Sequence record: LC494302.1
Direction: 5' to 3' (one strand)
DNA: 64,000 nt
Below the pieces are notes generated by a model that worked only from the letters and a program-made list of their open reading frames with translations, made no database searches and was not told where the DNA came from. Every line of letters begins with the position of its first letter. Position 1 is the first letter of the stretch. Of this stretch, positions 9,899-28,348 are shown piece after piece. The position numbers and the translations under genes are program-made.

Positions 9899-9945
9899 GG
9901 GCGTAACTATGCACCCGGTGGGCTTGAGTCTTTCTCGACTTGATG
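9899..9945 (-). ncRNA. putative small RNA, RCCCANNGGGTGC family
   Basis: Minus-strand TTGCTT-N16-TATAAT (9978-9951) then ...AGCCCACCGGGTGCATAGTTACGCCC; no ORF. Confidence 0.45.
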
Positions 9946-10067
9946 GAACTATTATACAGTACTGAAAAAATAAAGCAATACCCTGGAAGCAAAAAAGTTT
10001 TAATTAATTTGCTTGCTATCCTGGGCCGGACTATGGTACTATATTTCAGTACTGAGAAAGTGCGTTT

Positions 10068-10092
10068 ACCTGCTAGGGTGCGGGAGTGTATC
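10068..10092 (+). ncRNA. putative small RNA, RCCCANNGGGTGC family (variant)
   Basis: ACCTGCTAGGGTGCGGGAGTGTATC; weak promoter TTGCTT-N17-TATGGT at 10009. Confidence 0.35.
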
Positions 10093-10114
10093 CTTTTTTT
10101 ATATCTTGAATTTT

Positions 10115-10160
10115 GGGCGTAATTCCGCACCCTCTGGGGTTTCCGCTTTCTCGCGTCTAT
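10115..10160 (-). ncRNA. putative small RNA, RCCCANNGGGTGC family
   Basis: Minus-strand TTGACT-N16-TATAAT (10194-10167) then ...CCCCAGAGGGTGCGGAATTACGCCC. Confidence 0.45.
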
Positions 10161-10352
10161 GTAGTAATTATACGCTTTTTCAGGATCAAGTCAATACCTA
10201 AAAACAAAATAATTGAAAATAATTTAACGCGTTTAAACGGCCCGTAACGCCCTGGAATGATTAGAATGGTGCAAATGTATAGCTTAGGTGTATTAATGCG
10301 TTAGAATGCGTCTGAGGCCGTTTTATGGGGTGTAGTAGTGATTTGGTTGATT

Positions 10353-10439
10353 CAGTACTGAATAATAGTACTCCTATATAGAAAGATAGTTCCCCTGGAT
10401 GGTTGCAGTACTGAATAATAGTACTCCTATATAGAAAGA
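10353..10439. repeat. 34-bp direct repeat
   Basis: CAGTACTGAATAATAGTACTCCTATATAGAAAGA at 10353-10386 and 10406-10439. Confidence 0.85.
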
Positions 10440-10553
10440 AAACTATTTTAAAAGTATTTGTAGAAAGTACTTGCACCGTACTGATAAAAGCGTATAATGT
10501 TTTACATCGAGAGCGGGAACACTTCCCGCTACACATTAAGAGAGATTAAAACG

Positions 10554-10916
10554 ATGGCGACTCAAATCAATAAAATCATGCTTAACCTGGTAAACTTCCG
10601 CGATGAGATGAAAGGTCTTCCGGCTGAAACTGTAAAAATTCACATTGCAGCTTATCGGGAACTTATTGCAATGTTGCCGCTTAAGCGTGAACAATACGCC
10701 GCTACTTTGATGCTGGATTCAATGATCCATATAATGATCTCAAATGATTTAACGATGGTTTATCAGTACATGGGCGAAAATTTCGCGGTGTGTAGTAAGC
10801 CAGTACCAGGGATGGCAACAACTGAGGAATTGCACGGCTTAAACTTAAAACAAGATGCATGGGATAATATGCCTCGTTTCCTGGTATGGGCTGACAGTGG
10901 CAAAATTTACAAATAA
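10554..10916 (+). CDS. hypothetical early protein
   Basis: ATG 10554 after promoter/hairpin cassette. Confidence 0.8.
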   Translation: MATQINKIMLNLVNFRDEMKGLPAETVKIHIAAYRELIAMLPLKREQYAATLMLDSMIHIMISNDLTMVYQYMGENFAVCSKPVPGMATTEELHGLNLKQDAWDNMPRFLVWADSGKIYK

Positions 10917-11008
10917 GTTTAATAAAGTACTTGCAAACTATGTTTAATGGCGTATAATGTTTTACATCAGGTGGGGAATAGTTCCCCACTATATAAGAGG
11001 ATTAAAAA

Positions 11009-11248
11009 ATGGCTAAATCAAAAATGTTCTTAGGTCACAAAAACAAAACTCATTGGAATGTAAGCCTGTGGATTAATAACGATGAGGGATTGTATCGGTT
11101 GGCCCTGGACTTTATTGCCGCCAATACTAATCGCAATGATGCGGCCCGTCATATGATGTTATTTTTAGAACAGACTGGACAAGATAAAACACCGGACGGA
11201 TTCAAATATAGCACTACTGCGATCCGTGCGGCGATGGTTGGAATGTAA
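11009..11248 (+). CDS. hypothetical early protein (GHKNKTHWNVSLWINN family)
   Basis: SD GAGGA; paralog of 13050..13289. Confidence 0.85.
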   Translation: MAKSKMFLGHKNKTHWNVSLWINNDEGLYRLALDFIAANTNRNDAARHMMLFLEQTGQDKTPDGFKYSTTAIRAAMVGM

Positions 11249-11334
11249 TAGAATTTATTTAAAGTACTATCATTTTTTTGCGATAGTACTTTATAATAGT
11301 GTTTTATTCATACACCAACGATAAGGGCAACAGC

Positions 11335-11601
11335 ATGAATATTAAGTATTTTGCGACGCGTGAACAAGCTCGGATCGCCGCACGCCAGGACGGGGCAACG
11401 TTTAAAGATATGGGAGCGGGATCGGCAAGTGGTGAACGTTGGGCCATTGTAAAGCGTAGTACGGCCAGATCTTTACAGTACTGGTTAGCGGCCTTAAAAA
11501 GTCCCGATAGTGTATCGCGTCGAGTGGTAGAAATAAAGCTCGACCGAAAGGGCAACCGCGTGACCGTGTACCGTACTAAAAAGATTGCAGTACTTGAATA
11601 A
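11335..11601 (+). CDS. hypothetical early protein
   Basis: MNIKYFATREQAR...DRKGNRVTVY; paralog of 24367..24771. Confidence 0.8.
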   Translation: MNIKYFATREQARIAARQDGATFKDMGAGSASGERWAIVKRSTARSLQYWLAALKSPDSVSRRVVEIKLDRKGNRVTVYRTKKIAVLE

Positions 11602-11688
11602 AAAGTACTTGCAAACTATGTTTAATGGCGTATAATGTTTTACATCGAGAGCGGGAACACTTCCCGCCTATAACCTGGAGTAATAAAA

Positions 11689-11919
11689 ATGACTAATATG
11701 TATATGACTGAAGTTAAAACCGTAAAAGATACTACCACGAATAAAACTACTTACTTACAGCGGATCTGTGGTGTATGGCAACGTATCAGCAAATCAAAGT
11801 ACTTTAAATTAACATCATATGCAAATCGTTCGGATTCATTCAGTACTGAAATAAAAGGTAATAAAGTACACCAATACGGCACTTATTATTATTATAGCCT
11901 GGACGCGATTGCAGTATAA
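11689..11919 (+). CDS. hypothetical early protein
   Basis: SD GGAG; own promoter cassette. Confidence 0.8.
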   Translation: MTNMYMTEVKTVKDTTTNKTTYLQRICGVWQRISKSKYFKLTSYANRSDSFSTEIKGNKVHQYGTYYYYSLDAIAV

Positions 11920-11984
11920 GCAGTTTACAAATCTTTACAATTGCCGGTATTGACTTATTTTGTCAGTACTGGCATAATGTATTC

Positions 11985-12030
11985 ATTGGCAGATAAGCCG
12001 TAGCCCATAGGGTGCGGGAGTGTATCTATA
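11985..12030 (+). ncRNA. putative small RNA, RCCCANNGGGTGC family
   Basis: TTGACT-N17-CATAAT (11950) then GGCAGATAAGCC hairpin and GCCCATAGGGTGCGGGAGTGTATC (12003-12026). Confidence 0.5.
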
Positions 12031-12049
12031 GAAAAAGTAGTTTAGTATA

Positions 12050-12087
12050 GTTACAATTGTGCACCCGGTGGGTTAGCTGTTGTCATG
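12050..12087 (-). ncRNA. putative small RNA, RCCCANNGGGTGC family
   Basis: Minus-strand TTGACA-N17-CATAAT (12122-12094) then ACCCACCGGGTGCACAATTGTAAC. Confidence 0.5.
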
Positions 12088-12204
12088 GGGTATATTATGC
12101 CAGTACTTGATAATGCTGTCAATACTTTTTTTTTAATATTCAGTACTGAAAACTATTTTTAAAAAGTACTTGCAAACTATGTTTAAAGGCGTATAATGTT
12201 TTAC

Positions 12205-12279
12205 ATCAGGACGGGGAACGAAATAAGTAACTTCCCGTTAAGTAGCCCAGGAGTAAGGCACACGAAAAACTCCCCTGAT
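12205..12279 (+). ncRNA. putative three-way-junction RNA (TAAG-N4-ACGAAAAA loop family)
   Basis: ATCAGG/CCTGAT closing stem, ACGGG/CCCGT and GGAG/CTCC hairpins; directly after promoter 12170. Confidence 0.5.
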
Positions 12280-12347
12280 AAAATAGTTTGACAATTGTTT
12301 TTAAAAGCGTATAATACTTACATCAACTACTGAATGAGGGTTACAAA

Positions 12348-12959
12348 ATGAAAACTATCACTACTACTACTTATGTTATGGCTTTTTCTGAATTGAACGC
12401 AGAACAACAAACGTCAGCTATCGAACTGGTTCGGGAACGTGAAAAAAACTTAAACGATGATTATTTTTCTGAAAGTGAAATTGAATACTATAAAGAAACA
12501 GTACTACCGGAATATGGCATTAATGACGCTGAAATACAATTCAGTGGCTTTTGGTCCCAGGGTGACGGTGCATCAATCAGTACTGACCACGTTGACGCAG
12601 TGAAGTTTTTACGCAAGGTAAGAGCATTAACTAAGTATCGCTCAATCCGTCACTTGCTGAATGAAGATGATTTGGCGATGAGTGTAAAGCGTTCGCACTC
12701 CCACTACTCGCATGAGAATACTGTAAGCGGGTACATTGAATCGGCTTACACTGATTTAACCGCAAAACAAGAAACGTTAGTTAATGAGCTTGAGGAACTA
12801 CTCACTGAAACTATTCGTGAATTATCCCGCAAGTTGTACCGTGATTTAGAGAATGCATATGAGGATCAATTCACTACTGAAAACATTACGGCACTGATTG
12901 AGGGTAACGAATATCAATTCAATGTTATTGATGGAGTAGTAGAATCAATCGAATATTAA
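12348..12959 (+). CDS. conserved phage hypothetical protein (FSGFWSQGDGAS motif)
   Basis: 203 aa acidic; SD GAGG; motif recurs in phage proteins of unknown function. Confidence 0.85.
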   Translation: MKTITTTTYVMAFSELNAEQQTSAIELVREREKNLNDDYFSESEIEYYKETVLPEYGINDAEIQFSGFWSQGDGASISTDHVDAVKFLRKVRALTKYRSIRHLLNEDDLAMSVKRSHSHYSHENTVSGYIESAYTDLTAKQETLVNELEELLTETIRELSRKLYRDLENAYEDQFTTENITALIEGNEYQFNVIDGVVESIEY

Positions 12960-13049
12960 TTTAAAAAGTACTTGCAAACTAAGTTTAAAAGCGTATAATA
13001 CTTTATATCGAGGCGGGGAGTGGTTCCCCGCTCAAACGAGGATTTAAAA

Positions 13050-13289
13050 ATGGCTAGTACTAAAACTTACAACGGACACAAAAACAAAACTCATTGGAAT
13101 GTAAGCCTTTGGATTAATAACGGTGAGTCATTGTATCGGCTTGCTCAAAGTTGCATCGCACAAAGTAGAACTAAAGATATTGCTGCGGAATGTATGTACC
13201 GCAGATTAAAAGCCAACGGTACTACTACAACGCCGGACGGCTTTAAGTATAGCACTACTGCGATCCGTGCTGCAATGGTTGGAATGTAA
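13050..13289 (+). CDS. hypothetical early protein (GHKNKTHWNVSLWINN family)
   Basis: SD GAGGA; paralog of 11009..11248. Confidence 0.85.
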   Translation: MASTKTYNGHKNKTHWNVSLWINNGESLYRLAQSCIAQSRTKDIAAECMYRRLKANGTTTTPDGFKYSTTAIRAAMVGM

Positions 13290-13346
13290 TATTCAGTACT
13301 GAGATAATGGCGGGAACTATTACCCGCCTTTACTGAGGGTTATCTA

Positions 13347-13634
13347 ATGAGTAAAGTAATAAAGTACAATGTGTTAAGCAAATCATTGTCTATCAGTGAA
13401 TGCACCGATGGTTTTTGGATGTACGATGAAACGCGTGGCATGAATTTAGCTATGCGTGCAAAAACTGCTGAGGCGGCGTATATTCAAGCACTGGAATACT
13501 ACCAGGAACGTTTGAAGGAAGTAGAAGAAGATTATAAAAGCCTCAAAGCGAAAGTAGATCATTTCGTCGGTCAATTCGTGGAAGACAACGACGAGGACGG
13601 GCACTACTGCGACCGTTGCGGATCTTACAGTTAA
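13347..13634 (+). CDS. hypothetical protein, coiled coil with C-terminal CDRC
   Basis: SD GAGG. Confidence 0.8.
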   Translation: MSKVIKYNVLSKSLSISECTDGFWMYDETRGMNLAMRAKTAEAAYIQALEYYQERLKEVEEDYKSLKAKVDHFVGQFVEDNDEDGHYCDRCGSYS

Positions 13635-13651
13635 GTACTAAGGATTATATA

Positions 13652-13864
13652 ATGAGTGATTTAATTGAACGTATCAAAGAGCTTGAAGAAAAAGAATTGC
13701 AGTTGATCGGGTTACGGAATAAAGTATTCCATGATTTAGGTGGCTTTATTAATGCCTGGGATAGTGGCGATCCTGATGCGTTACCTGCTAACCGCCAGGC
13801 GATGATCAATGATGTGCGTGGTGTCTTTGATTATGTTTTAAAAGTACTAGACACTAAGCAATAA
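13652..13864 (+). CDS. hypothetical protein
   Basis: ATG 13652 after AAGGA. Confidence 0.75.
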   Translation: MSDLIERIKELEEKELQLIGLRNKVFHDLGGFINAWDSGDPDALPANRQAMINDVRGVFDYVLKVLDTKQ

Positions 13865-13925
13865 AGGCGTATAATACTTTATATTGGTACTGACAAACAT
13901 TATAAGCGATGCAGGAGCTTTAATC

Positions 13926-14111
13926 ATGACAACATTATCTGAGGTTATCCGCGATCAAGCTGCAAAGGCTGGAATGACTGTTATCAATGTAGGGATCAAG
14001 ATTGAGATCTCCCCTAACGAGTTGCAAGGGATTCCCGATCCTACTAGCTGGGATCGTGCTGGGCGAATGATGAGTAATGCTTCATTACTGGACGGTACAA
14101 AATTTAATTAA
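13926..14111 (+). CDS. hypothetical protein
   Basis: ATG 13926 after CAGGAG. Confidence 0.75.
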   Translation: MTTLSEVIRDQAAKAGMTVINVGIKIEISPNELQGIPDPTSWDRAGRMMSNASLLDGTKFN

Positions 14112-14196
14112 AAAGTACTTGCAATTAGTTTTCAGTACTGTATAATGGTTTACATCAAAGGGAGAAATGGTTCTCCCTGGTAATGAGGAAAATACA

Positions 14197-14418
14197 ATGG
14201 CTAATATCACTACTCTTTCCCAACTGGAAGCACTGGTTAAATCTATGCGGGAACATGCCGACAAAATCGGCGTACAAGATCCAGCCGTTTGCTTCTGCGA
14301 CGAATTGAATGATGATACACTGGTAATAGCAGAAGTCCAGGACGTTTCTAACTATTCCTCGCGTTACACTGGCGGCGTAGCAAATAAAGGTGACTTCTGT
14401 TTATACCTTACAAAATAA
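14197..14418 (+). CDS. hypothetical early protein
   Basis: ATG 14197 after GAGGA; own cassette. Confidence 0.8.
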   Translation: MANITTLSQLEALVKSMREHADKIGVQDPAVCFCDELNDDTLVIAEVQDVSNYSSRYTGGVANKGDFCLYLTK

Positions 14419-14423
14419 CAACG

Positions 14424-14453
14424 CGGGGAGATAATAACTCCCCGTTACTTTTT
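14424..14453 (+). terminator. intrinsic terminator
   Basis: CGGGGAG/CTCCCCG then TTACTTTTT. Confidence 0.6.
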
Positions 14454-14473
14454 CAGTACTGAATCATTTAATA

Positions 14474-14518
14474 GACGGATCTCGGCACCCGGTGGGTTAG
14501 TGACTGTTTCGTCTTGAT
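14474..14518 (-). ncRNA. putative small RNA, RCCCANNGGGTGC family
   Basis: Minus-strand TTGACA-N17-CATAAT (14553-14525) then ...CACTAACCCACCGGGTGCC. Confidence 0.45.
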
Positions 14519-14661
14519 GTAGTAATTATGCCAGTACTGGATGCACTTGTCAACAACTATTTTTCAAATACTTTTTATTAAAATACTTGCAATTAGTTTT
14601 TAAACGCGTATAATGTTTTGCATAGGGGGAGCGGTTCCCCTGGTAACTAAGGAATAATAAA

Positions 14662-14898
14662 ATGCTTGAACAAATCAAATCAACGTCTGCGAATGTAACG
14701 GGAACGGTTGTACACTTTACTAGTGATGAATCGCGGGGCGTTCCCTATTGTGCTGTACATGTAAACACTGATGGCAACTACTGGTTTACGGTTTACGGAT
14801 CATATTCATTTGGACGGCCAGGGCATCAAAAAATTCTGGATAAAGTACAACCAACGGGTAAAAATATCACTGCCGAAATGTTTTATAAAAAATCATAA
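14662..14898 (+). CDS. hypothetical early protein
   Basis: SD AAGGA; own cassette. Confidence 0.8.
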   Translation: MLEQIKSTSANVTGTVVHFTSDESRGVPYCAVHVNTDGNYWFTVYGSYSFGRPGHQKILDKVQPTGKNITAEMFYKKS

Positions 14899-14982
14899 AG
14901 TACTTGCAATTAGTTTTTAGTACTGTATAATATTTTACATCGCAAGGGGAAACGGTTTCCCCTGGTAACTAAGGATAATCAA

Positions 14983-15282
14983 ATGAAAATTGCAATCATC
15001 GCCCTGGCTTTATCTGTTTCCTCTTTCGCTGTTAATGCGTCGTTAGATGTAAGTAGTGAAAAATTCATTCAGTGCACTGTTGCAATGACCGATGAAAGAA
15101 CTGGCGAGATTGTATTAAAGGATTTAGAGATCCAGCCGGAAGCATTTAAAAACGGCCCGTTCCATGAAGAAGACGAAAACGGTAGCACGACAATTTATTA
15201 TGATGCCAGTTCCAAGCGTGGATCGGTCACTGTAATGGATACTGAGAAAGTAACACACACAGGCGTTATTAATTGCCGTTGA
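14983..15282 (+). CDS. putative exported protein
   Basis: Signal peptide-like MKIAIIALALSVSSFAVNA. Confidence 0.75.
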   Translation: MKIAIIALALSVSSFAVNASLDVSSEKFIQCTVAMTDERTGEIVLKDLEIQPEAFKNGPFHEEDENGSTTIYYDASSKRGSVTVMDTEKVTHTGVINCR

Positions 15283-15303
15283 TAGATACTACGGGGTAAC
15301 ATC

Positions 15304-15534
15304 ATGACTAAGCGAATTGTTTTACTTAACGAAAGCAGTACTACACAACTACTTAACGCCGTGCATTATGATATTGAAACGAGCGTTAATCTTATCAGTA
15401 CTGTAGTACTGTTGGACACTGGAAAGGTCGCCAATGATAAAGCGATTGCAGGTATATTAACGGATCTTGAGCCTGGTAGCAGTGCACCCATAACGTTAAA
15501 TGGTAAAGTGTTTAATATTTTACTCACTGATTAA
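15304..15534 (+). CDS. hypothetical protein
   Basis: ORF track; SD GGGG. Confidence 0.75.
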   Translation: MTKRIVLLNESSTTQLLNAVHYDIETSVNLISTVVLLDTGKVANDKAIAGILTDLEPGSSAPITLNGKVFNILLTD

Positions 15535-15540
15535 GTACAT

Positions 15541-15562
15541 AGCCCACCAGGTGGGCTTTTTT
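15541..15562 (+). terminator. intrinsic terminator
   Basis: AGCCCAC-CAG-GTGGGCT then T run. Confidence 0.8.
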
Positions 15563-15651
15563 GTTTTTATAGTATCGTAGTACTGAGATACTTTGAAAAT
15601 AGTTTTAAGAAAGTAGTTGACATTACCACAGAAAAGCGTAGAATGTATTAC

Positions 15652-15724
15652 ATCAAGACGGGGAGCACTAAGTAGACCGCCAGTAAGTCGAACGAAAAAC
15701 TGGACACGTCGAGAAAACTTTGAT
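15652..15724 (+). ncRNA. structured leader, TAAG-N4-ACGAAAAA loop family (third copy)
   Basis: CCAG-TAAGTCGAACGAAAAA-CTGG (15680-15703); GACG/CGTC and ATCAA/TTGAT stems. Confidence 0.45.
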
Positions 15725-15767
15725 ACACTAATAAACGTAAACTAAACTTTAATTGAGGATTTATAAA

Positions 15768-16250
15768 ATGGCTAATGTAAAATCATTCATCAAAGCACTG
15801 GTAGCAAATGAAACTAACGTCGCGGCTGAGATCCTGGCTGAACTGGATAACGATACCATGAAAGCGGTACGCAATAATTTTAACATCGCGTACAGTACTG
15901 CGAAAGAACTACAAGCAAATAAAGCGGCAGAAATTGAAGCGGCAAAGGCGGCCCGTGAAGCAGAACTACAAGCAACAATCGAAAGTATCCAGGCGGCGGT
16001 GTCTGGATTGGATCTGGAAGTGGTTGTGGAAATGGCACATAAAGCCCTGGCGGTTAAGTATGGTGAAGATAAGCCAGAATCTAAACCTAAAAAATGGATT
16101 CAAGAACGTGTTACTGTAGTACTTGATAACGGGGAAGAACATATGATTCCTGTACGCGGTAACTGCATTGCGGTAGTACTGGACGCTATCAAAGAAAGCG
16201 GTATGACTCGCGAGGAATGGATCGAAGCTCATCGCAAAGTTGAAGCATAA
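15768..16250 (+). CDS. H-NS-like protein (coiled coil plus H-NS-like C-terminal domain)
   Basis: VLDNGEEHMIPVRGNCIAVVLDAIKESGMTREEW aligns by eye with the H-NS C-terminus [35 protein letters not shown]; Ala/Glu/Lys coiled coil upstream. Confidence 0.5.
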   Translation: MANVKSFIKALVANETNVAAEILAELDNDTMKAVRNNFNIAYSTAKELQANKAAEIEAAKAAREAELQATIESIQAAVSGLDLEVVVEMAHKALAVKYGEDKPESKPKKWIQERVTVVLDNGEEHMIPVRGNCIAVVLDAIKESGMTREEWIEAHRKVEA

Positions 16251-16271
16251 CAATTAAAGTACTGAATCACT

Positions 16272-16298
16272 AGCCCACCTTAAACAGTGGGCTTTTTT
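16272..16298 (+). terminator. intrinsic terminator
   Basis: AGCCCAC/GTGGGCT then TTTTT. Confidence 0.8.
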
Positions 16299-16535
16299 GT
16301 GTCTGTAGTATTCCAGTCCACCAGCACCGCCTAGAATCGATTCTAACGCATTAAACTGATTATCTGATGCATTGCCCTAGCTGGTGGCGTGAAGGTCGTT
16401 AGAATGCGATTGAGAGCGTTTAAAGTATTTTGCAAAAAGTAATAAAAAGTACTTGCACGATTAAGAGATTAGCGTATAATGTTTTACATCGAGAGGGGGA
16501 AACGGTTCTCCTTCCAAATCAAAGGAATCAAAACA

Positions 16536-16992: not shown

Positions 16993-17073
16993 AAATATTA
17001 TCACAGTACTATTGACATAGTTTGATAGTACTGGCATAATAGATTTTATCAAGACAACTAAGAGGAAATTAAA

Positions 17074-18981: not shown

Positions 18982-18984
18982 AAA

Positions 18985-19019
18985 AAGTGGTTGACTTCGG
19001 TCAGCCATTTTGCTATTAT
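18985..19019 (+). terminator. terminator-like hairpin overlapping a promoter
   Basis: AAAGTGGTTGAC-TTCG-GTCAGCCATTTT contains -35 TTGACT (18991), N17, TATTAT. Confidence 0.65.
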
Positions 19020-19025
19020 ATATTC

Positions 19026-19070
19026 ATTGAGAGATAGCTCACTAGCCCACAGGGTGCAGGAGTGTATCTA
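19026..19070 (+). ncRNA. putative small RNA, RCCCANNGGGTGC family
   Basis: GAGAGATAGCTC hairpin then GCCCACAGGGTGCAGGAGTGTATC (19045-19068). Confidence 0.5.
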
Positions 19071-19192
19071 TTGTATAATGTTTGAGTACTTAAAACTATT
19101 TTTAAAAAAGTACTTGCAAACTATCTCAATAAGCGTATAATGTTTTACATCGCAAGGGGAAACGGTTTCCCCTAGTAATAAGGAAACAAATC

Positions 19193-19534
19193 ATGACTAT
19201 CTCAATTGCTCAATCTAACTTTGAAAACGAAATCATCGCCCAGGCACTGCGTTTAAATGATGGTCGGGCCGAAATCAATTACGGTTTCAATTCAGGCGGT
19301 TGTGAAAAATATCAGTACTTTATAACTGCTGATGGCTGTGTCCTGGGCATCAATACAGTTATTGTAAACATCCAAAAAATTAATTTCAATGATCCAGACG
19401 ATAGCCAGTTTTACATCACTGGCGTAGACGTGAACTATGAGGATGACTCACTAACTGATGATCACACTGGCGAGCGGTTAGAAAGTGCATACGGTGAAGA
19501 TGATTATCAGTCCGGTCCAGAAGATTTCGAATAA
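19193..19534 (+). CDS. conserved phage hypothetical protein (DVNYED...DDHTGERLESAYGE)
   Basis: SD AAGGA; own cassette. Confidence 0.85.
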   Translation: MTISIAQSNFENEIIAQALRLNDGRAEINYGFNSGGCEKYQYFITADGCVLGINTVIVNIQKINFNDPDDSQFYITGVDVNYEDDSLTDDHTGERLESAYGEDDYQSGPEDFE

Positions 19535-20658: not shown

Positions 20659-20697
20659 TCTATTGACAATATCATCCAGTACTGGCATAATACTTAC

Positions 20698-20744
20698 ACC
20701 AAGACGAGAACGTCACTAACCCATAGGGTGCACAAATGTAACTG
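20698..20744 (+). ncRNA. putative small RNA, RCCCANNGGGTGC family
   Basis: TTGACA-N17-CATAAT (20663) then GACGAGAACGTC hairpin and ACCCATAGGGTGCACAAATGTAAC (20719-20742). Confidence 0.5.
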
Positions 20745-20989: not shown

Positions 20990-21247
20990 ATGGCTGTAGG
21001 ATTCGCGAAAGATGGGGCCGAACAAGACGAGATTAACGCAGTGATTCAGGCTGCCGTTAACCACGCTAGAAAGCAAATTAACGCACAAATAGAATCACTG
21101 ATACATTGCCTCGACTGCGGCGATATAATCCCTGAGAAACGACGCCAGGCCGTTAAGGGATGTAAGTACTGCATAACTTGCCAGGAGGATCATGATAGTA
21201 CTTTTAAACGTCCCCCGCGTAATTGTTGGCATAGATCTATGAGATAA
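20990..21247 (+). CDS. DksA/TraR-family C4 zinc-finger protein (YbiI-like)
   Basis: CLDCGDIIPEKRRQAVKGCKYCITCQE zinc finger; N-terminus MAVGFAKDGAEQDEIN resembles YbiI-type proteins. Confidence 0.85.
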   Translation: MAVGFAKDGAEQDEINAVIQAAVNHARKQINAQIESLIHCLDCGDIIPEKRRQAVKGCKYCITCQEDHDSTFKRPPRNCWHRSMR

Positions 21248-21310: not shown

Positions 21311-21667
21311 ATGGGAATACAACATATCACGCGTACTACTGACAATGGCGAGATCACTGGCTATCAAGTACAGGGCAAAGTAGCACAATTGCAGTACTGG
21401 TTTGTTAAACGTGGAATCATTGCACCGGATCTTGATTATGACCGTGTAGCGTTTATTGATTCTCTTTATGTTGATCCTGATAGTCGGGGCAATGGTGAAG
21501 GTAACGAATTAATGAATGCCTTTATTGATGCCGCCGATGATTCAGATTGTATCATCTTAGAATGCGATACGGGAGAAGATAACGCCTTTAATCTTAAAGA
21601 ATGGTACGAAGGTTTCGGATTCGAGGTATTGATAGATAGTGAATATCCTATCATGATTTTATCATAG
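21311..21667 (+). CDS. GNAT-family acetyltransferase
   Basis: IDSLYVDPDSRGNGEGNELM (acetyl-CoA motif A) and LKEWYEGFGF. Confidence 0.85.
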   Translation: MGIQHITRTTDNGEITGYQVQGKVAQLQYWFVKRGIIAPDLDYDRVAFIDSLYVDPDSRGNGEGNELMNAFIDAADDSDCIILECDTGEDNAFNLKEWYEGFGFEVLIDSEYPIMILS

Positions 21668-21934: not shown

Positions 21935-21961
21935 TATTAATTTAATAGAGGATAACAATAA

Positions 21962-22285: not shown

Positions 22286-22368
22286 AAACTATTGACAATA
22301 GATTATAGTACTGTATAATAAGTTACATGAAGGGGAGAAATGATTCTCCCCACTGAGAGGAAAGAAAA

Positions 22369-22581
22369 ATGCAAGGTCAACTAATCGTTCGTAAATGGTC
22401 TGATACTAACGAAAAACCGTGGGATGTACAATACATCGGACCGGATGGGGTATCACGTTATCAGCCTGGCGTAACGCATAGTACTGAGCAATATGCCGCC
22501 GCTCACCGCGAACGCCTGTTAGAATCCATGAAACAGGGATTCTGTGAAAAATTCATTCAAGATCATTGGCTGAAAGATTAA
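22369..22581 (+). CDS. hypothetical early protein
   Basis: SD GAGGA; own cassette. Confidence 0.8.
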   Translation: MQGQLIVRKWSDTNEKPWDVQYIGPDGVSRYQPGVTHSTEQYAAAHRERLLESMKQGFCEKFIQDHWLKD

Positions 22582-22598
22582 TAGAAGGAGTACAGCTT

Positions 22599-22691
22599 AT
22601 GCAAATGAATCCGATGATTATTGTTTTAGCTGTACTTATGATCATTCATGCAATTGTAGAAGTATTAACGCAATCAGGAGTAATAAAATGA
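22599..22691 (+). CDS. small membrane peptide
   Basis: 30 aa MQMNPMIIVLAVLMIIHAIVEVL...; SD AAGGAG. Confidence 0.6.
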   Translation: MQMNPMIIVLAVLMIIHAIVEVLTQSGVIK

Positions 22692-22861
22692 TTCAAGTAG
22701 AATTATCAGTACTGAAAGATCTGTTTTATCGGTTAGGTACTACTGGAGAGTATCCTAAAAGTGATACCGCAAAACTTTTTGTATCACTCGATTTATGGCA
22801 ACGCGAACAATTAGTAATGTCCTGGCGTAAAGGTAAAGCAGATAGCGAGGTGAAAGCATGA
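22688..22861 (+). CDS. small hypothetical protein
   Basis: 57 aa MIQVELSVLKDLFYRL...; SD AGGAG; ATGA overlap. Confidence 0.7.
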   Translation: MIQVELSVLKDLFYRLGTTGEYPKSDTAKLFVSLDLWQREQLVMSWRKGKADSEVKA

Positions 22862-23007
22862 AAGAATTCTTATTCGAAGTAGTGTTTCAAGGTGTCGGTA
22901 GTAATCAATTGATTCGCTCAAGTGGTTACAATGTTAACCAGGCATGGAATAACATTAAACAAATGTACCCGAACGCTATCACATATCGCAACCCAAAAGA
23001 AGTTTAA
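22858..23007 (+). CDS. small hypothetical protein
   Basis: 49 aa MKEFLFEVVFQG...; SD GAGGTG. Confidence 0.7.
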   Translation: MKEFLFEVVFQGVGSNQLIRSSGYNVNQAWNNIKQMYPNAITYRNPKEV

Positions 23008-23016
23008 AAATAATTG

Positions 23017-23057
23017 AAAAAGGGATTGACTCCGGTCAGTCCCTTTGCTATTATATA
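23017..23057 (+). repeat. 41-bp terminator/promoter module (copy 1 of 3)
   Basis: AAAAAGGGATTGACTCCGGTCAGTCCCTTTGCTATTATATA identical at 23017, 26009, 28265. Confidence 0.9.
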
Positions 23058-23060
23058 CGC

Positions 23061-23100
23061 ATAGAAACAAATCAGCCCACCGGGTGCATAAATGTATCTA
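23061..23100 (+). ncRNA. putative small RNA, RCCCANNGGGTGC family
   Basis: GCCCACCGGGTGCATAAATGTATC (23075-23098) after TTGACT-N17-TATTAT. Confidence 0.5.
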
Positions 23101-23180
23101 TTGTTTGCTGGTGGCTAGTACTGAAAACTATTTTTAAAAAAGTACTTGCATTGTACTTAGAATCAAGTATAATGTTTTAC

Positions 23181-23253
23181 ATCAGGACGGGGAACGAAAC
23201 AAGTAACCCCGTTAAGTAGTCCAGGAGTAAGACATACGAAAAACTCCCCTGAT
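23181..23253 (+). ncRNA. putative three-way-junction RNA (TAAG-N4-ACGAAAAA loop family)
   Basis: Near copy of 12205-12279; ACGGGG/CCCCGT and GGAG/CTCC stems. Confidence 0.5.
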
Positions 23254-23322
23254 AAAATAGTTTGACAATAGAAAGTAAACGAGTATAATACTTACATCAA
23301 CCACTGATAAGGAAACATAAAA

Positions 23323-23598
23323 ATGCGGATTCTACTGACAGCTAACGAAATCGAACAAGTACTGACTACTAACCTGGAAGACTGGAAACGTGAAGCAGAT
23401 ATCCAGGCGGTTCAATGGTTAAATGATAAGTTAACGCCGGATGACTTAAGCAAGATTGTAGATCCTCAATTCTACGAAGATATCCACGACACCGCGTTAA
23501 GCGTCGAGGATGTACTAGATAAGCACTTTATTGATACTGATTTGCAGGTTTACGGTCGTAAAAACTTTATCACTATTCACGACATTTACAATAATTAA
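23323..23598 (+). CDS. hypothetical early protein
   Basis: SD AAGGA. Confidence 0.8.
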   Translation: MRILLTANEIEQVLTTNLEDWKREADIQAVQWLNDKLTPDDLSKIVDPQFYEDIHDTALSVEDVLDKHFIDTDLQVYGRKNFITIHDIYNN

Positions 23599-23686
23599 GT
23601 ATTGACAAAGTATCTTAGTACTGTATAATAGTTTACATCGAGTGAGGGGAAACGGTTCCCCTCCTAACAAAGAGAGAGAAATAAAA

Positions 23687-23869
23687 ATGGCTAAGTGCAC
23701 TATCTGCAAGAAAGAAATAGTATTAGTTCCAAGTGCCCGTGAACGTGCCGCTCGGTTCGGTGGCAAAGCGTCAGACTATACAAAAATGTTTACTGCCCAT
23801 ACAGCTTGCCAGGTAGCAAAACGTTCACAAGAAAGCGTAGAATTAATGCGTAAACTTTCCAAAAAATAA
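23687..23869 (+). CDS. small zinc-binding-like protein
   Basis: MAKCTICKK...HTAC; own cassette. Confidence 0.75.
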   Translation: MAKCTICKKEIVLVPSARERAARFGGKASDYTKMFTAHTACQVAKRSQESVELMRKLSKK

Positions 23870-23956
23870 GTATTGACAAAGTATCTTAGTACTGTATAAT
23901 AGTTTACATCAAGTGAGGGGAATGGTTCCCCTCCTAACTAAAAGAGAGAAATAAAA

Positions 23957-24280
23957 ATGGCTATGATCCTTGCCCAGAAAGTAGAATTGAAAATTGTAAC
24001 CTCCTTTGACATTAACGTTAATCGGTGGACTGATTCACACGGCAATACTTACCACTCTTGCTACGTGTCTGCGTTAATTGGCGACCGCTGGGAAGACCTG
24101 GGACACGAAACCTTTACATACGGTTACGGTACACAAGGCGAATACACGGGCTTGGAGATCATTAAAGAAACCGTTATAGGTTTCAACCCGAAAGAAAAAG
24201 TTATTCACCGCATCGAGGAAGAGATCAACAAAGAAATAACAGTTCGCTACCACGATGTAAAACGTAAGAAAGACATGTAA
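23957..24280 (+). CDS. hypothetical early protein (GNTY...YGYG...DVKRKKD family)
   Basis: Paralog of 17074..17418. Confidence 0.85.
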   Translation: MAMILAQKVELKIVTSFDINVNRWTDSHGNTYHSCYVSALIGDRWEDLGHETFTYGYGTQGEYTGLEIIKETVIGFNPKEKVIHRIEEEINKEITVRYHDVKRKKDM

Positions 24281-24366
24281 TAGAATCCATTTAAAGTACT
24301 ATTTGACATTGCCCAGATAGTACTTTATAATAGACTCTAACTTGTAGTACTAACTCAACTAATAGG

Positions 24367-24771
24367 ATGTATACCATGATTACTAAATTCTACGCTACCC
24401 GTGAAGCTGCCCGTATTGTTGCACGCGAGGAAGGCGAAACATTTAAAGACATGGGCAAAGATGCACCGAAAGGTCAACGCTGGGCCGTACAGTTCAAAGA
24501 GATCTCTGATATTGTGAATTCACCGGAGCCAGTACTAACAGCAGCAGAACTAAAACGAGCGGATTTACTGGCGTCAATACTTGATGCACAAGATGAGTTT
24601 ATCGCTGATTCTGATATCAAAGTACAGACAAACCACACCGCTTGGACTCACGCGGATCACCTGGCAAACCTTAAGCGTCCAAGTGAACTGATTCGCAACC
24701 AGAAAGAGATCCGACACGACCGTAAGGGTAATCGTGTAACAGTATACAGTAAACGCCGCCAGGTTATCTAA
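24367..24771 (+). CDS. hypothetical early protein
   Basis: Paralog of 11335..11601 with internal insertion. Confidence 0.8.
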   Translation: MYTMITKFYATREAARIVAREEGETFKDMGKDAPKGQRWAVQFKEISDIVNSPEPVLTAAELKRADLLASILDAQDEFIADSDIKVQTNHTAWTHADHLANLKRPSELIRNQKEIRHDRKGNRVTVYSKRRQVI

Positions 24772-24793
24772 TAACTTGCAGTACTAACAACAC

Positions 24794-24818
24794 GGCGGGA
24801 TCAGTTCCCGCCTTTTTT
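24794..24818 (+). terminator. intrinsic terminator
   Basis: GGCGGGA/TCCCGCC then TTTTTT. Confidence 0.75.
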
Positions 24819-24832
24819 ATAGGACAAACAAA

Positions 24833-25087
24833 ATGATTAAGGTTCAACTATATAAAGATAACATCTTACGGGTACACTATAAAGCACCTCAGAGAATCAT
24901 CACAAAGGCCGTACAGCTTGCAAATGAGTTTATTAATGGTAACCTATTACCTAGGAAGTTAAGCAACGGGAAACTGCGTGTAATCGACGTGGACACTAAC
25001 AACAGGATAGTAATCGAGAACACAGGAAAGATAAACCTTTATGAGCATCAACAATACAATAAGAAAATAAAACTAATATCACGTTGA
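24833..25087 (+). CDS. possible ParE/RelE-like fold protein
   Basis: KAVQL...PRKL.NGKL..IDV...RIV...LYEHQQYN pattern recalled from ParE-like domain proteins; by-eye only. Confidence 0.45.
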   Translation: MIKVQLYKDNILRVHYKAPQRIITKAVQLANEFINGNLLPRKLSNGKLRVIDVDTNNRIVIENTGKINLYEHQQYNKKIKLISR

Positions 25088-25140
25088 CAGTACTCAAATG
25101 TTTTAGTACTATATGTACATACCAACACGGGGGAAACAAA

Positions 25141-25383
25141 ATGATTACTTTAGAAAAACGTATCAAAGAAACTACATCGCTGGTGGAACTGTTAACAGTA
25201 CTCAAATGTAAAACAACACCATTCAGCACGCCGGACTTTATTAATATGGTTGATGTTAATGGTCGCTATCGTATCACGGTCGAACAAGGAGCGGCGAAAG
25301 TATTCAGTACTAAAAACACGAAGGAAGTGATCCACGCCGTTAATGTTAAAAAAGTAGTTGCCATTGATAGTAAAGTACTGTAA
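25141..25383 (+). CDS. hypothetical protein
   Basis: ATG 25141 after GGGGGA. Confidence 0.75.
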   Translation: MITLEKRIKETTSLVELLTVLKCKTTPFSTPDFINMVDVNGRYRITVEQGAAKVFSTKNTKEVIHAVNVKKVVAIDSKVL

Positions 25384-25414
25384 GATAGTTACATTAACTC
25401 AAGGAGAACATGCA

Positions 25415-25999
25415 ATGCGTAATTATACTAAATTCATCCGTACACTGTCAGAAATGGAAACCAACAAAGAGATCCTTTCAGCTTGTCGGTTAGCTGGCCT
25501 GGAGATCATCGGTGCTGGTTCTTCCCGTATAGTTTTCGCTTTAAATGATCGGTTAGTGATTAAGGTCGCGAATTGTGATGCGGGTGTAGAACAAAATGAA
25601 ACTGAATGTAAGGTATGGAATTTTTTAGACTATGACCGCCCTCAGTTGAAACAGTACTTTGCAAAGGTGCATATGCATTTATGCGATCCTGATAATATGT
25701 TTATCGTTATGGATCGGTTGAGTACTGCAAGTAAAGGCAGTGTGAAGCACGTAAACGCGTGCAATGAATTAAAGTACAATATTAAACGTAATGCAATCGA
25801 CCGCCAGCACCGCTTTGCTGATGCACTACAACACGTTGATGATACATTATCAACACTAACGATAAGAGATATCAGAAAACAGAATATCGGCCAGGATCGT
25901 AATGGACTTATTAAAGTACTTGATTACGGTTTAACCAGCAATATCTGGAATCAGTACTATAAAAAGCGTGATGTGGCAGCAAGTAAGGTAACACGATAA
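25415..25999 (+). CDS. protein kinase-like protein
   Basis: GAGSSRIVF Gly loop, VIKVA lysine, EQNETE helix-C Glu, DIRKQNIG catalytic loop, DYG; SD AAGGAG. Confidence 0.8.
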   Translation: MRNYTKFIRTLSEMETNKEILSACRLAGLEIIGAGSSRIVFALNDRLVIKVANCDAGVEQNETECKVWNFLDYDRPQLKQYFAKVHMHLCDPDNMFIVMDRLSTASKGSVKHVNACNELKYNIKRNAIDRQHRFADALQHVDDTLSTLTIRDIRKQNIGQDRNGLIKVLDYGLTSNIWNQYYKKRDVAASKVTR

Positions 26000-26008
26000 A
26001 AAAGATTA

Positions 26009-26049
26009 AAAAAGGGATTGACTCCGGTCAGTCCCTTTGCTATTATATA
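26009..26049 (+). repeat. 41-bp terminator/promoter module (copy 2)
   Basis: Identical to 23017-23057. Confidence 0.9.
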
Positions 26050-26052
26050 TCC

Positions 26053-26097
26053 ATTGAGAGATAACTCACTGACCCATAGGGTGCGGAAGTGTATCTA
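26053..26097 (+). ncRNA. putative small RNA, RCCCANNGGGTGC family
   Basis: GAGAGATAACTC hairpin then ACCCATAGGGTGCGGAAGTGTATC (26072-26095). Confidence 0.5.
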
Positions 26098-26219
26098 TTA
26101 TATAAGTATTCAGTACTGAAAACTATTTTTAAAAAAGTACTTGCATTGTACTTAGAATCAAGTATAATGTTTTATATCGAGAGGGGAAATGGTTCTCCCT
26201 GGCAATAAGGAATAAAATC

Positions 26220-26441
26220 ATGACTACAATGACTTGCATTTACGCTTCCAATCTACTGAATGATGCGGCCTTTAATGTTGATTCAGAATATCAATGTTAT
26301 CGGGATGAAAATAAAAAAGTTTTTGTAGTTGATAATAATGGTTTCCATATTGAATTACAATCCGGCTTCACTGGTGTTGATGGTAAATCAGTATGGGGCG
26401 TACAGGATGATAAAGGCACATATCATTTTAAACGTAATTAA
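26220..26441 (+). CDS. hypothetical early protein
   Basis: SD AAGGA; own cassette. Confidence 0.8.
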   Translation: MTTMTCIYASNLLNDAAFNVDSEYQCYRDENKKVFVVDNNGFHIELQSGFTGVDGKSVWGVQDDKGTYHFKRN

Positions 26442-26525
26442 GTATTGACAAAGTATACCAGTACTGTATAATAGTTTACATCAAGGGGAGAATAGTTCTC
26501 CCCGATACTAAAAGGAAACAAAATT

Positions 26526-26798
26526 ATGTCCAGCTACTCCGCTACTATGATCATTAAAGATATGAACGGTAATCCTACTTCTGCTGGTGGATCATTTGGA
26601 AACATTAATTTAGATGGTCGGTTATCCATGCAATCAGCAATCGATGCAGCGAAAGAAGTTTTTAAGAATGAATGTACTGTTAGTAAGCTGGATTATATGG
26701 GATTTGCTATCGAAAAAACTAATCGTTTTGTGGACTACAAAAAACCACTGATGATTGATACTAACCTGAAAGCAAACGAAGTGGAGTACTTATTATGA
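26526..26798 (+). CDS. hypothetical early protein
   Basis: SD AAGGA; own cassette. Confidence 0.8.
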   Translation: MSSYSATMIIKDMNGNPTSAGGSFGNINLDGRLSMQSAIDAAKEVFKNECTVSKLDYMGFAIEKTNRFVDYKKPLMIDTNLKANEVEYLL

Positions 26799-26986
26799 CA
26801 GTTGAAGAAGTTAAAAAAGTACTGGCAGTACTACGCTATCATAATCATTGTAAGGTGAAGAATGATCCTGATTATCTTGATTCATCCCTGGAAGAGGATA
26901 CACTACAAGCAATAAGCCATATGCAAACATTAGCAAAGCGTATGACCGAAAAGAATAGACCGGACTATATCGGAAATAAAATTTAA
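26795..26986 (+). CDS. hypothetical protein
   Basis: SD GGAG; ATGA overlap. Confidence 0.75.
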   Translation: MTVEEVKKVLAVLRYHNHCKVKNDPDYLDSSLEEDTLQAISHMQTLAKRMTEKNRPDYIGNKI

Positions 26987-27072
26987 AAAGTACTTGCATT
27001 GTAGTTAGATTAACGTATAATGTTTTACATAGAGCGGGGGAATAGTTCTCCCGCCAGTCCAGGAGATACACC

Positions 27073-27336
27073 ATGAACACTATCGAAATCACTATCAATG
27101 CACACGTATACGACAACGTAATCATGCAAACTACTATGACCGCTAATGATACCAGTACTTTGCGGAATACTGTTATTAGTGCCGTATGTGCCGCTATCGG
27201 TGATGTCGCCCTGGAAAATGCAGAACATATCAACAACGGTTTCACTATGTGCAAGCGTGATAACGCAAAACATATCATCGTAGAAGGTTACGGCGGTGTA
27301 GAATTTAATGTTTATATGAAAAAAGTACTTGCATAA
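27073..27336 (+). CDS. hypothetical early protein
   Basis: SD AGGAG; own cassette. Confidence 0.8.
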   Translation: MNTIEITINAHVYDNVIMQTTMTANDTSTLRNTVISAVCAAIGDVALENAEHINNGFTMCKRDNAKHIIVEGYGGVEFNVYMKKVLA

Positions 27337-27403
27337 TAACTAAAACAAAGTATAATGTTTTGCATAGGGGGAGATATCCTCCCCCACTAAAAGGAGTAAT
27401 AAA

Positions 27404-27628
27404 ATGGCTAACTTTGATGAACTGATGCGGGAAGTAGCTAACCTGGCAGAAGAGAAGAAATCATTCGATTCTATCTATAACACCGCTCATCGTGATTCAG
27501 TACTGGCATGTACTCAGGATCAAAAAGATGAACTAATCGCCACCTATCATGAAGCATGGAAGTACTACCGACAATGGGAGAAAGAAGAAAGAGAGTCTAC
27601 CATTGACGGCCTCAACAATCTAATCTAA
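27404..27628 (+). CDS. hypothetical early protein
   Basis: SD AAGGAG; own cassette. Confidence 0.8.
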   Translation: MANFDELMREVANLAEEKKSFDSIYNTAHRDSVLACTQDQKDELIATYHEAWKYYRQWEKEERESTIDGLNNLI

Positions 27629-27704
27629 AAGTTTTATTTCAGTACTATTGACATAGCTTGATAGTACTGATGTAATAACTTTACTAACTACAAGGGGAAA
27701 CATA

Positions 27705-27962
27705 ATGGAACAGTTCACACAATATCGGGTAAATCCTCAAGCTATGGCCTACGTAGAAGACCATAAAACATTACCAGTACTAACACCAATTAAAGGCCAT
27801 ATCTATCGTGCAATGTCATGGAATACCGCCCAGGATGGATATACTACCGCTGGCGTGGGTATGTATTGCGGGAATGGTGAATGGTTTGATCCAAATAATC
27901 CGGTAGCCATTGACAGTACTGAAAAAATGAAATGGGCCGACTACATCGAAGATATTTCATAA
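27705..27962 (+). CDS. hypothetical early protein
   Basis: SD AGGGG. Confidence 0.8.
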   Translation: MEQFTQYRVNPQAMAYVEDHKTLPVLTPIKGHIYRAMSWNTAQDGYTTAGVGMYCGNGEWFDPNNPVAIDSTEKMKWADYIEDIS

Positions 27963-28051
27963 AACTATTTGACAGTACTAACCAGTAATGTATAATGTTT
28001 TACATAGAGCGGGGGAATAGTTCTCCCGCCAATAGTTTGGAGTAAAACATT

Positions 28052-28252
28052 ATGTCTATCGCTATCGCCCTGGTTGAAGTACTGAAAGAAGCTAAAGCCA
28101 ACCAGATCGACGTAAAGATCCAGGAACTACAAAACGGCGTAATCGGCTGTACTTGTACCGCTGGTGGAGCGGCAGACTATCGAGAACACGAATCACTCGA
28201 ATCACTGGTTCGGTATCTTACCATGATCGTTGATGATTGGAGAATCATCTAA
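28052..28252 (+). CDS. hypothetical early protein
   Basis: SD GGAG; own cassette. Confidence 0.8.
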   Translation: MSIAIALVEVLKEAKANQIDVKIQELQNGVIGCTCTAGGAADYREHESLESLVRYLTMIVDDWRII

Positions 28253-28264
28253 CAAAAAAGAATA

Positions 28265-28305
28265 AAAAAGGGATTGACTCCGGTCAGTCCCTTTGCTATT
28301 ATATA
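28265..28305 (+). repeat. 41-bp terminator/promoter module (copy 3)
   Basis: Identical to 23017-23057. Confidence 0.9.
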
Positions 28306-28308
28306 CGC

Positions 28309-28348
28309 ATAGACAAAAACTAGCCCACAGGGTGCATAGGTGTATCTA
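28309..28348 (+). ncRNA. putative small RNA, RCCCANNGGGTGC family
   Basis: GCCCACAGGGTGCATAGGTGTATC (28323-28346). Confidence 0.5.

Follow-up and report, generated by a model that had tools for sequence, protein, structure and literature searches.

What purpose is served by a short motif that recurs eleven times, each time just behind a promoter of its own, is the question raised by a stretch of the genome of SP27, an Escherichia coli phage of the genus Asteriusvirus that belongs to the PBECO4/121Q group of Rak2-like jumbo myoviruses. The stretch analyzed here (the window, positions 1–64,000) corresponds to positions 124001–188000 of the 347-kb record LC494302.1, to which its 5-kb part 9800–14800 is 100% identical, and all eleven copies lie at window positions 9899–28347, within what corresponds to the direct terminal repeat (DTR) of these phages. 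The motif is a conserved, DTR-restricted, promoter-linked element of the sense strand with two alternative pairings. It probably functions as an RNA structure and, much more tentatively, it is proposed to be a switch in the RNA leader, one that decides soon after initiation what becomes of the transcript and that a trans-acting factor probably reads. Rak2-like jumbo phages are often isolated on E. coli, Klebsiella, Salmonella, and plant-associated Enterobacterales, and their terminal repeat of about 21 kb holds some 60 tiny genes. A promoter-linked module gives a handle on the early programme and a concrete way into the expression and control of the first DNA that enters the cell. Such a module would be a new family beside the few known phage leader and antitermination RNAs, and its partner, if found, could reveal a new principle of host takeover or counter-defence.

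A promoter-linked element of the terminal repeat

The string CCCNNNGGGTGC occurs in ten exact copies in the window, where 0.07 are expected, and the pattern GGGTGC-N5-TGTAWC in eight, compared with 0.25 expected. A covariance model (R1), built on 52 distinct copies (alignment A1) and run with its filters off over all 64 kb, returned nine matches of 38–57 bits together with two weak variants, one at 10109–10162 on the minus strand (20 bits) and one at 10046–10099 on the plus strand (17 bits), and nothing else above background. These are exactly the eleven copies listed in an initial annotation made from the letters alone. Every copy in the window lies downstream of a promoter in the same orientation, in which a TTGxxx box and a −10 hexamer are separated by 16–17 nt, and the core begins 20–28 nt past this hexamer. 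The initial annotation was thus right in giving the copies σ70 promoters of their own and in calling that of the copy at 10068 weak (TTGCTT-17-TATGGT).

The linkage extends to the relatives. In alignment A2, which gathers 67 distinct copies from Rak2-like phages of Enterobacterales, 66 of the 67 have a σ70-type promoter upstream in the same orientation, compared with 6/67 in the control, and 45 show a TG-extended −10 box. Since the orientation relative to the promoter is fixed in the relatives as well, and conservation independent of orientation was not found, the plain double-stranded DNA site that had been entertained as an alternative is disfavoured. The distance from the −10 box to the core is either 19–21 or 24–28 nt, and this variable spacing implies that the element keeps no rigid geometry with the RNA polymerase at the promoter. 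The longer class is the one that carries a small 5' hairpin. As had been annotated, a variable hairpin usually precedes the core: it is found in 30 of 44 distinct leaders, in 16–17 different stems with compensatory variety and purine-rich loops of 6–8 nt, and it ends 2–4 nt before the core (mean energy of −1.54 kcal/mol, against −0.37 ± 0.13 kcal/mol in shuffles). Leaders that lack it contain an A-rich stretch in its place.

The bounds of the DTR equivalent (window 8822–29750, about 21 kb) are derived from the records of two relatives. Window position 8822 aligns with base 1 of the fEgEco12 and vB_Ec-M-J records, and the termini of fEgEco12 were fixed by PhageTerm and restriction digests (PMC13070987). 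In turn, the annotated DTR of vB_Ec-M-J is 21,525 bp long and its end (position 21525 of that record) corresponds to about window 29750, an edge that is accurate to about 10 bp. These bounds enclose positions 9899–28347 and, therefore, 11 of 11 copies are inside the DTR equivalent, with none in the 43 kb of the window outside it. In the SP27 record, the repeat has been collapsed, the assembly being 'circular' and permuted.

A BLAST search with a 36-nt core query matched only Rak2-like phages of Escherichia, Klebsiella, Salmonella, Erwinia, Yersinia, Pectobacterium, Serratia, and Cronobacter. These matches fall under annotated terminal repeats, and they occupy twice as many places in records that contain both repeats. 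Moreover, when eight jumbo contigs were scanned whole, strict matches were confined to one region of at most 20 kb or, in a CBB-sized contig, to both terminal copies, and the Salmonella phage Munch carries 10 copies, all of them intergenic and none beyond the first 20.4 kb of its genome. Among bacteria, scanned at one genome per species, there were 27 matches, against about 17 expected by chance according to our own estimate, and none of them in an Enterobacterales genome; the motif was thus not borrowed from a host leader, and a host-derived element was rejected at this depth of one genome per species. About 10 of the 27 bacterial matches belong to Sulfurovum and other Campylobacterota, and they probably represent a single conserved locus unrelated to the phage element.

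Two alternative pairings of the core

The core consists of three segments, S1 (RCCC), S2 (GGGUGCR), and S3 (UGYRUCU), and it can fold in two ways, both of which had been noticed at the outset. In helix A, S1 pairs with the first four bases of S2 (GGGU) around a loop of 3 or 4 nt whose sequence varies. This hairpin is 99.6% paired across the 67 copies; its closing pair is A–U in 33 copies and G–U in 33, and a double change from C–G to U–A has taken place in two independent lineages, represented by a CBB copy and a Yersinia-phage copy. In helix B, the whole of S2 pairs with S3. The GGUGC:GUAUC pairing that had been proposed as an alternative is conserved family-wide and extends to a G–U-rich helix of 7 bp, which is 90.4% paired, compared with 29–57% when the arms are slid by 1–3 columns. 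Wherever its 3' arm varies, the base that faces G is a pyrimidine and the one that faces U is a purine, whereas the tetraloop varies freely (25 variants). The mean energy of helix B is −4.54 kcal/mol, against −2.03 ± 0.20 kcal/mol for shuffled 3' parts (best downstream fold with S1 held unpaired); that of helix A is −3.84 kcal/mol. In copies whose 3' box is of another type (AUCC or CGCCC), pyrimidines with which GGGU(G) can pair are still available once the register is shifted.

Because both helices use the same GGGU, they are mutually exclusive and, since both contain G–U pairs, they exist on the sense strand only. The dependence on G–U pairs, the change of spacing in helix A from 3 to 4 nt, and the free loops favour pairing within a single-stranded sense RNA over a fixed double-stranded site.

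Two further readings of the sequence were rejected. If the 5' leader (AGA...) paired over a distance with the 3' box (UCU), cognate duplexes should be the more stable, but their energy is the same as that of non-cognate ones (−4.67 and −4.53 kcal/mol, respectively). As for a coding mini-ORF (open reading frame), columns 17–19 read ATG, GTG, or TTG in 37 of 67 copies, not in TCC- or TCT-type boxes, and the resulting frames range from 1 to more than 25 codons and share no conserved peptide. In the copy at 20719, the ATG is immediately followed by TAA (window 20735–20740), forming a start–stop. These start codons are probably a by-product of helix B, as they are not conserved in the other box types.

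The eleven units and their surroundings

The units differ in promoter, 5' hairpin, and 3' flank. Unit 1 (9899–9978, minus strand) comprises TTGCTT-16-TATAAT, a 5' hairpin, and a core at 9923–9899 (37.8 bits with R1) with a 3' arm of the ACGCCC type; it points to the left genome end, and its copy is kept about 1.1 kb from that end in fEgEco12 and vB_Ec-M-J. Units 2 and 3 are the variants and converge on each other (10068/10140). In unit 2 (10009–10101, plus strand; core 10068–10092, 17.2 bits), helix A is weakened (CCU/AGG) and helix B is extended and followed by a run of seven T, forming a terminator-like hairpin at 10075–10094 with a T-run to 10101. Unit 3 (10115–10194, minus strand) has TTGACT-16-TATAAT, a 5' hairpin, and a core that starts at 10140 and contains a 4-nt loop (20.3 bits). 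The second convergent pair (12003/12073), annotated initially like the first, is formed by unit 4 (11950–12027, plus strand), with TTGACT-17-CATAAT and TG, a 5' hairpin, and a core at 12003–12027 (51.8 bits), and unit 5 (12049–12122, minus strand), with TTGACA-17-CATAAT and TG, no 5' hairpin, and a core at 12073–12049 (46.2 bits). Unit 6 (14415–14553, minus strand) uses TTGACA-17-CATAAT with TG, followed by a 5' hairpin and a core at 14497–14473 (48.1 bits); beyond it come AGTACT and a bidirectional terminator hairpin at 14444–14424, called on both strands, so that the predicted RNA of about 100 nt contains no ORF.

The remaining units are all on the plus strand. Unit 7 (18991–19069) has TTGACT-17-TATTAT, a 5' hairpin, and a core at 19045–19069 (55.6 bits), followed by a second promoter (19114–19141) and a gene (19193–19534). 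Unit 8 (20663–20743), with TTGACA-17-CATAAT and TG, a 5' hairpin, and a core at 20719–20743 (47.5 bits), is upstream of a TraR/DksA zinc-finger gene (20990–21247). The promoters of the last three units lie inside hairpins: in unit 9 (23026–23099; hairpin 23019–23046; core 23075–23099, 53.8 bits, no 5' hairpin), a second promoter at 23262–23289 and a gene at 23323–23598 follow; unit 10 (26018–26096; hairpin 26011–26038; core 26072–26096, 56.7 bits) has a 5' hairpin and precedes a gene at 26220–26441; and unit 11 (28274–28347; hairpin 28267–28294; core 28323–28347, 57.4 bits), without a 5' hairpin, is followed by a second promoter at 28415–28443 and a gene at 28497–28829. These three hairpins and a fourth at 18984–19011, that of unit 7, are terminator-like structures with a 12-bp stem that contain the −35 box of the motif promoter that follows and, thus, the end of one transcription unit overlaps the start of the next.

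Consequently, the initial statement that no ORF follows the copies stands for their immediate flanks and fails for those at 19045, 20719, 23075, 26072, and 28323, which are followed within about 120–270 nt by an annotated gene, with a second promoter and no terminator between. Its companion, a uniform RNA of about 45 nt, is not borne out either. A hairpin with a T-run directly after the element is found in one window copy (10075–10101) and in a few relatives; the other copies run into genes, into a convergent partner, or into a terminator about 50 nt further on. When the downstream layouts of the 52 copies were surveyed, 13–14 belonged to convergent pairs, in which the antisense core of the partner begins 33, 44, or 51 nt past the 3' box, a layout that is kept across genera, also for a pair situated some 1.2 kb inside the left genome end. 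About 10 copies are followed by a hairpin and T-run some 27 nt past the element, often the bidirectional terminator that serves the gene before it, and an RNA of about 95–105 nt is predicted for them. About 20 lead to a second promoter and a gene without an intervening terminator, and one or two run directly into a Shine–Dalgarno (SD) sequence and ATG. The genes 3' of the plus-strand copies belong to unrelated PHROG families, and a cis-regulator of one gene family was rejected on these grounds. In some Salmonella and metagenomic relatives, an A/T-rich palindrome (ATGATAATCAT) is located midway between convergent units (L002 8084, L047 6095, L085 7438); it is absent from the window.

Nearly every small gene in the repeat has its own promoter, and from about 29.8 kb onwards the genes overlap and are closely spaced. 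At the left end of the repeat, a stretch of 1.7 kb (window 8822–10553) contains no annotated ORFs and holds three of the motif units, together with additional promoters at 9186–9213 (plus) and 9853–9825 (minus) and a 34-bp direct repeat at about 10352–10385 and 10408–10441; a half-motif (AUAGGGUGA) opens the transcript of the 9186 promoter. A Pfam search of 40 DTR ORFs recognized, besides DUFs, a TraR/DksA-type zinc finger, a GNAT acetyltransferase, a ParE-like toxin domain, and a weak protein-kinase match (window 20990–21247, 21311–21667, 24833–25087, and 25415–25999, respectively), a set in keeping with a host-takeover module. No tRNA genes are present in the 64-kb window.

Two short sequences are enriched in this region. 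The octamer at 23107–23114, which we take to be the Chi sequence of E. coli, occurs in 10 copies in the window (0.43 expected), all of them inside the terminal repeat, at 9398 and 16318 on the minus strand and at 16380, 20377, 21839, 23107, 25179, 26583, 28160, and 28382 on the plus strand. On the minus strand, a copy is found only 576 bp inside the left end, and those on the plus strand reach to 1.4 kb from the right end, and these orientations are those that would face RecBCD entering at either genome end. The palindrome AGTACT, in turn, is found 271 times in the window, against about 21 expected from base composition, and 135 of these sites are in the repeat (6.5 per kb). Its sites lie in promoter spacers (CCAGTACTGG), abut the TTGCAA −35 boxes, or follow many motif copies at 0–27 nt, and a dimeric regulator may bind to them. 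Another class of promoters, TTGCAA-16-TATAAT with AGTAC in front (window 10931–10990, 11609–11670, 12170–12230, and others), has its own conserved leader hairpin, of the GCGGGAA...TTCCCGC type, directly 5' of small genes; 5'-terminal hairpins seem to be general in the early transcripts of SP27.

A possible leader switch, its rivals, and known systems

The reading that we favour, tentatively and at somewhat less than even chances, regards the motif as the 5' leader of a subclass of immediate-early transcripts that the σ70 RNA polymerase of the host would produce from the DTR. The optional 5'-terminal hairpin would stabilize the 5' end. Helix A could form first, while the RNA is still emerging, and helix B, being longer, G–U-rich, and on average slightly more stable, would then exclude it, so that the leader would switch between two states during transcription, much as an attenuator or a ribonucleic antiterminator (RAT)-type leader does. 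In this way, the fate of the transcript might be set about 45–50 nt from its start, the options being release, pausing, or cleavage at the A/U-rich tract past helix B, as opposed to read-through. The invariant segments would probably be recognized by a trans-acting factor, most likely a protein, that reads or biases the switch. The element would act as a leader in copies with a gene downstream, and in those that run into a terminator or a convergent partner it would give rise to short non-coding or antisense RNAs. The copy at 10068, in which a weakened helix A is accompanied by an extended helix B and seven T, that is, by a full terminator, is counted in favour of the switch, as are the confinement of the element to the DTR and to Rak2-like phages of Enterobacterales, its promoter linkage, and the two conserved pairings.

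Several observations weigh against this proposal. True covariation is limited to two-sided changes in one of the four pairs of helix A and two of the seven pairs of helix B, the formal signal being thin because most stem positions are invariant; column shuffles retain a nearly equal percentage of pairing in both helices, and a transition bias alone could yield the Y/R pattern of helix B. The 8 nt after helix B contain a mean of 3.26 T, with at least five T in 7 of 54 copies, and a T-run comes directly after it in the copy at 10068 and in few relatives. Since most copies lack a U-tract in this place, classical intrinsic termination is unlikely as a general outcome. Furthermore, the ORF-less convergent units are not obviously explained by a switch acting in cis, and among the 40 DTR ORFs Pfam detected no RNA-binding domain and, hence, no candidate for the binding protein. 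In the literature searched, the CBB paper offers RpoD-like promoters predicted with MEME only (PMC5259590), and beyond these predictions no study of promoters, leaders, or RNA in Asteriusvirus or Rak2-like phages was found. A bolder reading, which we consider doubtful, is that the two-state module defines a dedicated family of immediate-early riboregulators, present both in stand-alone RNAs of about 50–110 nt and in mRNA leaders. Within minutes of the start of infection, these would sequester or detect some factor that is conserved in enterobacteria, for example a ribonuclease, an RNA chaperone, a defence directed at RNA, or else RNA polymerase or one of its elongation factors. If true, host takeover would have an arm made of RNA.

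The first rival, that of the initial annotation, is a family of trans-acting small RNAs, whose abundant early products would sequester or direct a factor of the host or the phage (for example, a regulator, an RNA chaperone, or a nuclease of a defence system) and for which the gene-proximal copies would be incidental. Truly ORF-less copies do exist, each with a promoter of its own and, about 50 nt past the element, a terminator; they include the one at window 14415–14553 and several from metagenomic relatives and those of Klebsiella and Salmonella. Particular 5' hairpins define subfamilies that are kept across genera, the hairpin itself suggests that RNA stability matters, and the copy number is high in a DTR that is present twice per genome. 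Nevertheless, some 20 of 52 copies lead to a second promoter and a gene without a terminator, one or two to SD–ATG, and the units, dispersed rather than in tandem, have no uniform 45-nt product. The decoy or sponge role proposed in the initial annotation, by mimicry of ToxI or of anti-CRISPR RNAs, gained no positive evidence: no Enterobacterales genome carries the motif as a template for mimicry, and no Rfam family matched any unit. Rfam 15 gave no family at its gathering score across the whole window, and at E ≤ 10 over 9700–14700, which includes six units, it gave five matches, none of which overlaps a unit. ToxI, CRISPR repeats, retron msr, CsrB-type RNAs, JUMPstart/ops, riboswitches, and ribozymes are all without a match to the units; for the CRISPR direct-repeat (CRISPR-DR) families, the weak match to CRISPR-DR36 at 14021–14044 is outside the units, and host repeats were not directly compared. 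Titration of CsrA, already regarded as weakly founded, fares no better, as GGA is found in 24 of 67 copies and never more than once per copy. We consider a small-RNA family unlikely. An element read at the DNA level, either as a non-template hairpin and pause that loads an elongation factor (ops- or qut-like) or as an operator or roadblock for a DNA-binding protein, would explain the promoter-proximal position, the fixed orientation, the partly palindromic CCC-N3-GGG, and the near invariance of G in column 11, Y in column 20, and R in column 21, three columns that we take to fit the G(−10) Y(−1) G(+1) pattern of elemental pauses, with helix A ending 10 nt upstream. Such an element is rather unlikely, given that the CCC–GGG spacing is 3 or 4 nt with a loop sequence that changes along with it, that the closing position is G, forming a G–U pair, in half of the copies and never a pyrimidine, and that the Y and R positions are exactly those accounted for by helix B. 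Moreover, the element is not at a constant distance from the promoter, the difference being as much as 9 nt, and both an Rfam JUMPstart/ops match and an occurrence in Enterobacterales genomes are wanting.

Two other explanations were weighed. According to one of them, which we consider improbable, the transcripts would serve the DNA: short G-rich RNAs from strong promoters would form R-loops and, as happens at the R-loop origins of T4, these would prime replication or else promote recombination of one terminal repeat with the other. The restriction to the DTR, which also contains 10 Chi-like octamers oriented towards both ends, the promoters without a gene, and the A/T-rich tracts past the element would agree with this, as would the distant relationship between Rak2-like phages and T4 (PMC5259590). 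However, 10–11 copies per repeat on both strands, often just 5' of genes, are unlike known origins, and conserved, mutually exclusive RNA hairpins are unnecessary for the formation of R-loops. According to the other, the element has no function and is a leader that hitch-hiked with a duplicated promoter cassette and was kept by common descent. The units do share promoter types, namely TTGACT-17-TATTAT within a hairpin and TTGACA-17-CATAAT with AGTACT in the spacer, but the same types occur without the element at 17012 and 19869, and across genera the spacers, 5' hairpins, loops, and flanks diverge, while S1–S3 are fixed or undergo pairing-compatible changes only, which renders hitch-hiking highly improbable.

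The leader switch and its rivals can also be set beside systems that are already known. Type III antitoxins (ToxI) are encoded as tandem repeats, whereas the copies of SP27 are dispersed, 60 nt to several kb apart, on both strands; a CsrA sponge presents many GGA, mostly in hairpin loops, per RNA, whereas at most one is found per copy here. The ops site of RfaH is likewise a short conserved leader element with a possible small hairpin and a pause-like pattern, and the element of the SP27 type is confined to phages of enterobacterial host range; nevertheless, ops differs in that its JUMPstart/ops family has no Rfam match here, in that the motif is absent from Enterobacterales genomes (one per species), and in that the variation of the motif fits RNA wobble pairing and not a DNA site. 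The long terminal repeat of the distant jumbo relative PA5oct, a Pseudomonas phage, encodes ncRNA001 and ncRNA002, which are also ORF-free and highly transcribed. They account for 2–5% of phage reads in RNA-seq and are 236–451 nt long, and promoters were not recognized for them (PMC7318152). As homologues they were rejected, since the covariance model finds no motif in them (best score of 12.6 bits, E = 1.2).

A subset of the copies resembles Hfq-type small RNAs in that a promoter of their own drives an RNA of about 100 nt whose 5' part is conserved, whose middle is A/U-rich, and whose end is a Rho-independent terminator, although this layout is seen in about 10 of 52 copies only and the conserved part is structured, not a single-stranded seed. 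By analogy, the nut site of lambda and put of HK022 are small structured RNA modules located just 3' of early phage promoters, always in the sense orientation, in which a variable small hairpin may likewise be followed by a conserved segment. However, Pfam identified no N-like protein among the 40 DTR ORFs, unlike in lambda, and the convergent and promptly terminated copies would make no sense for processive antitermination. Attenuators, comprising the protein-read RAT/terminator leaders of the BglG/LicT type and the classical leaders, differ from the element in that they show no sequence similarity or Rfam match to it, most copies having no U-tract after the downstream helix and many no gene to regulate, and no cognate antiterminator protein was found. 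Nevertheless, they share with it a promoter-proximal leader in which a central segment can pair either upstream or downstream, two mutually exclusive helices that have this segment in common, and an upstream helix that is weaker and would form first, the downstream one being stronger; a single copy of the window and a small number from relatives also have a T-run behind the downstream helix.

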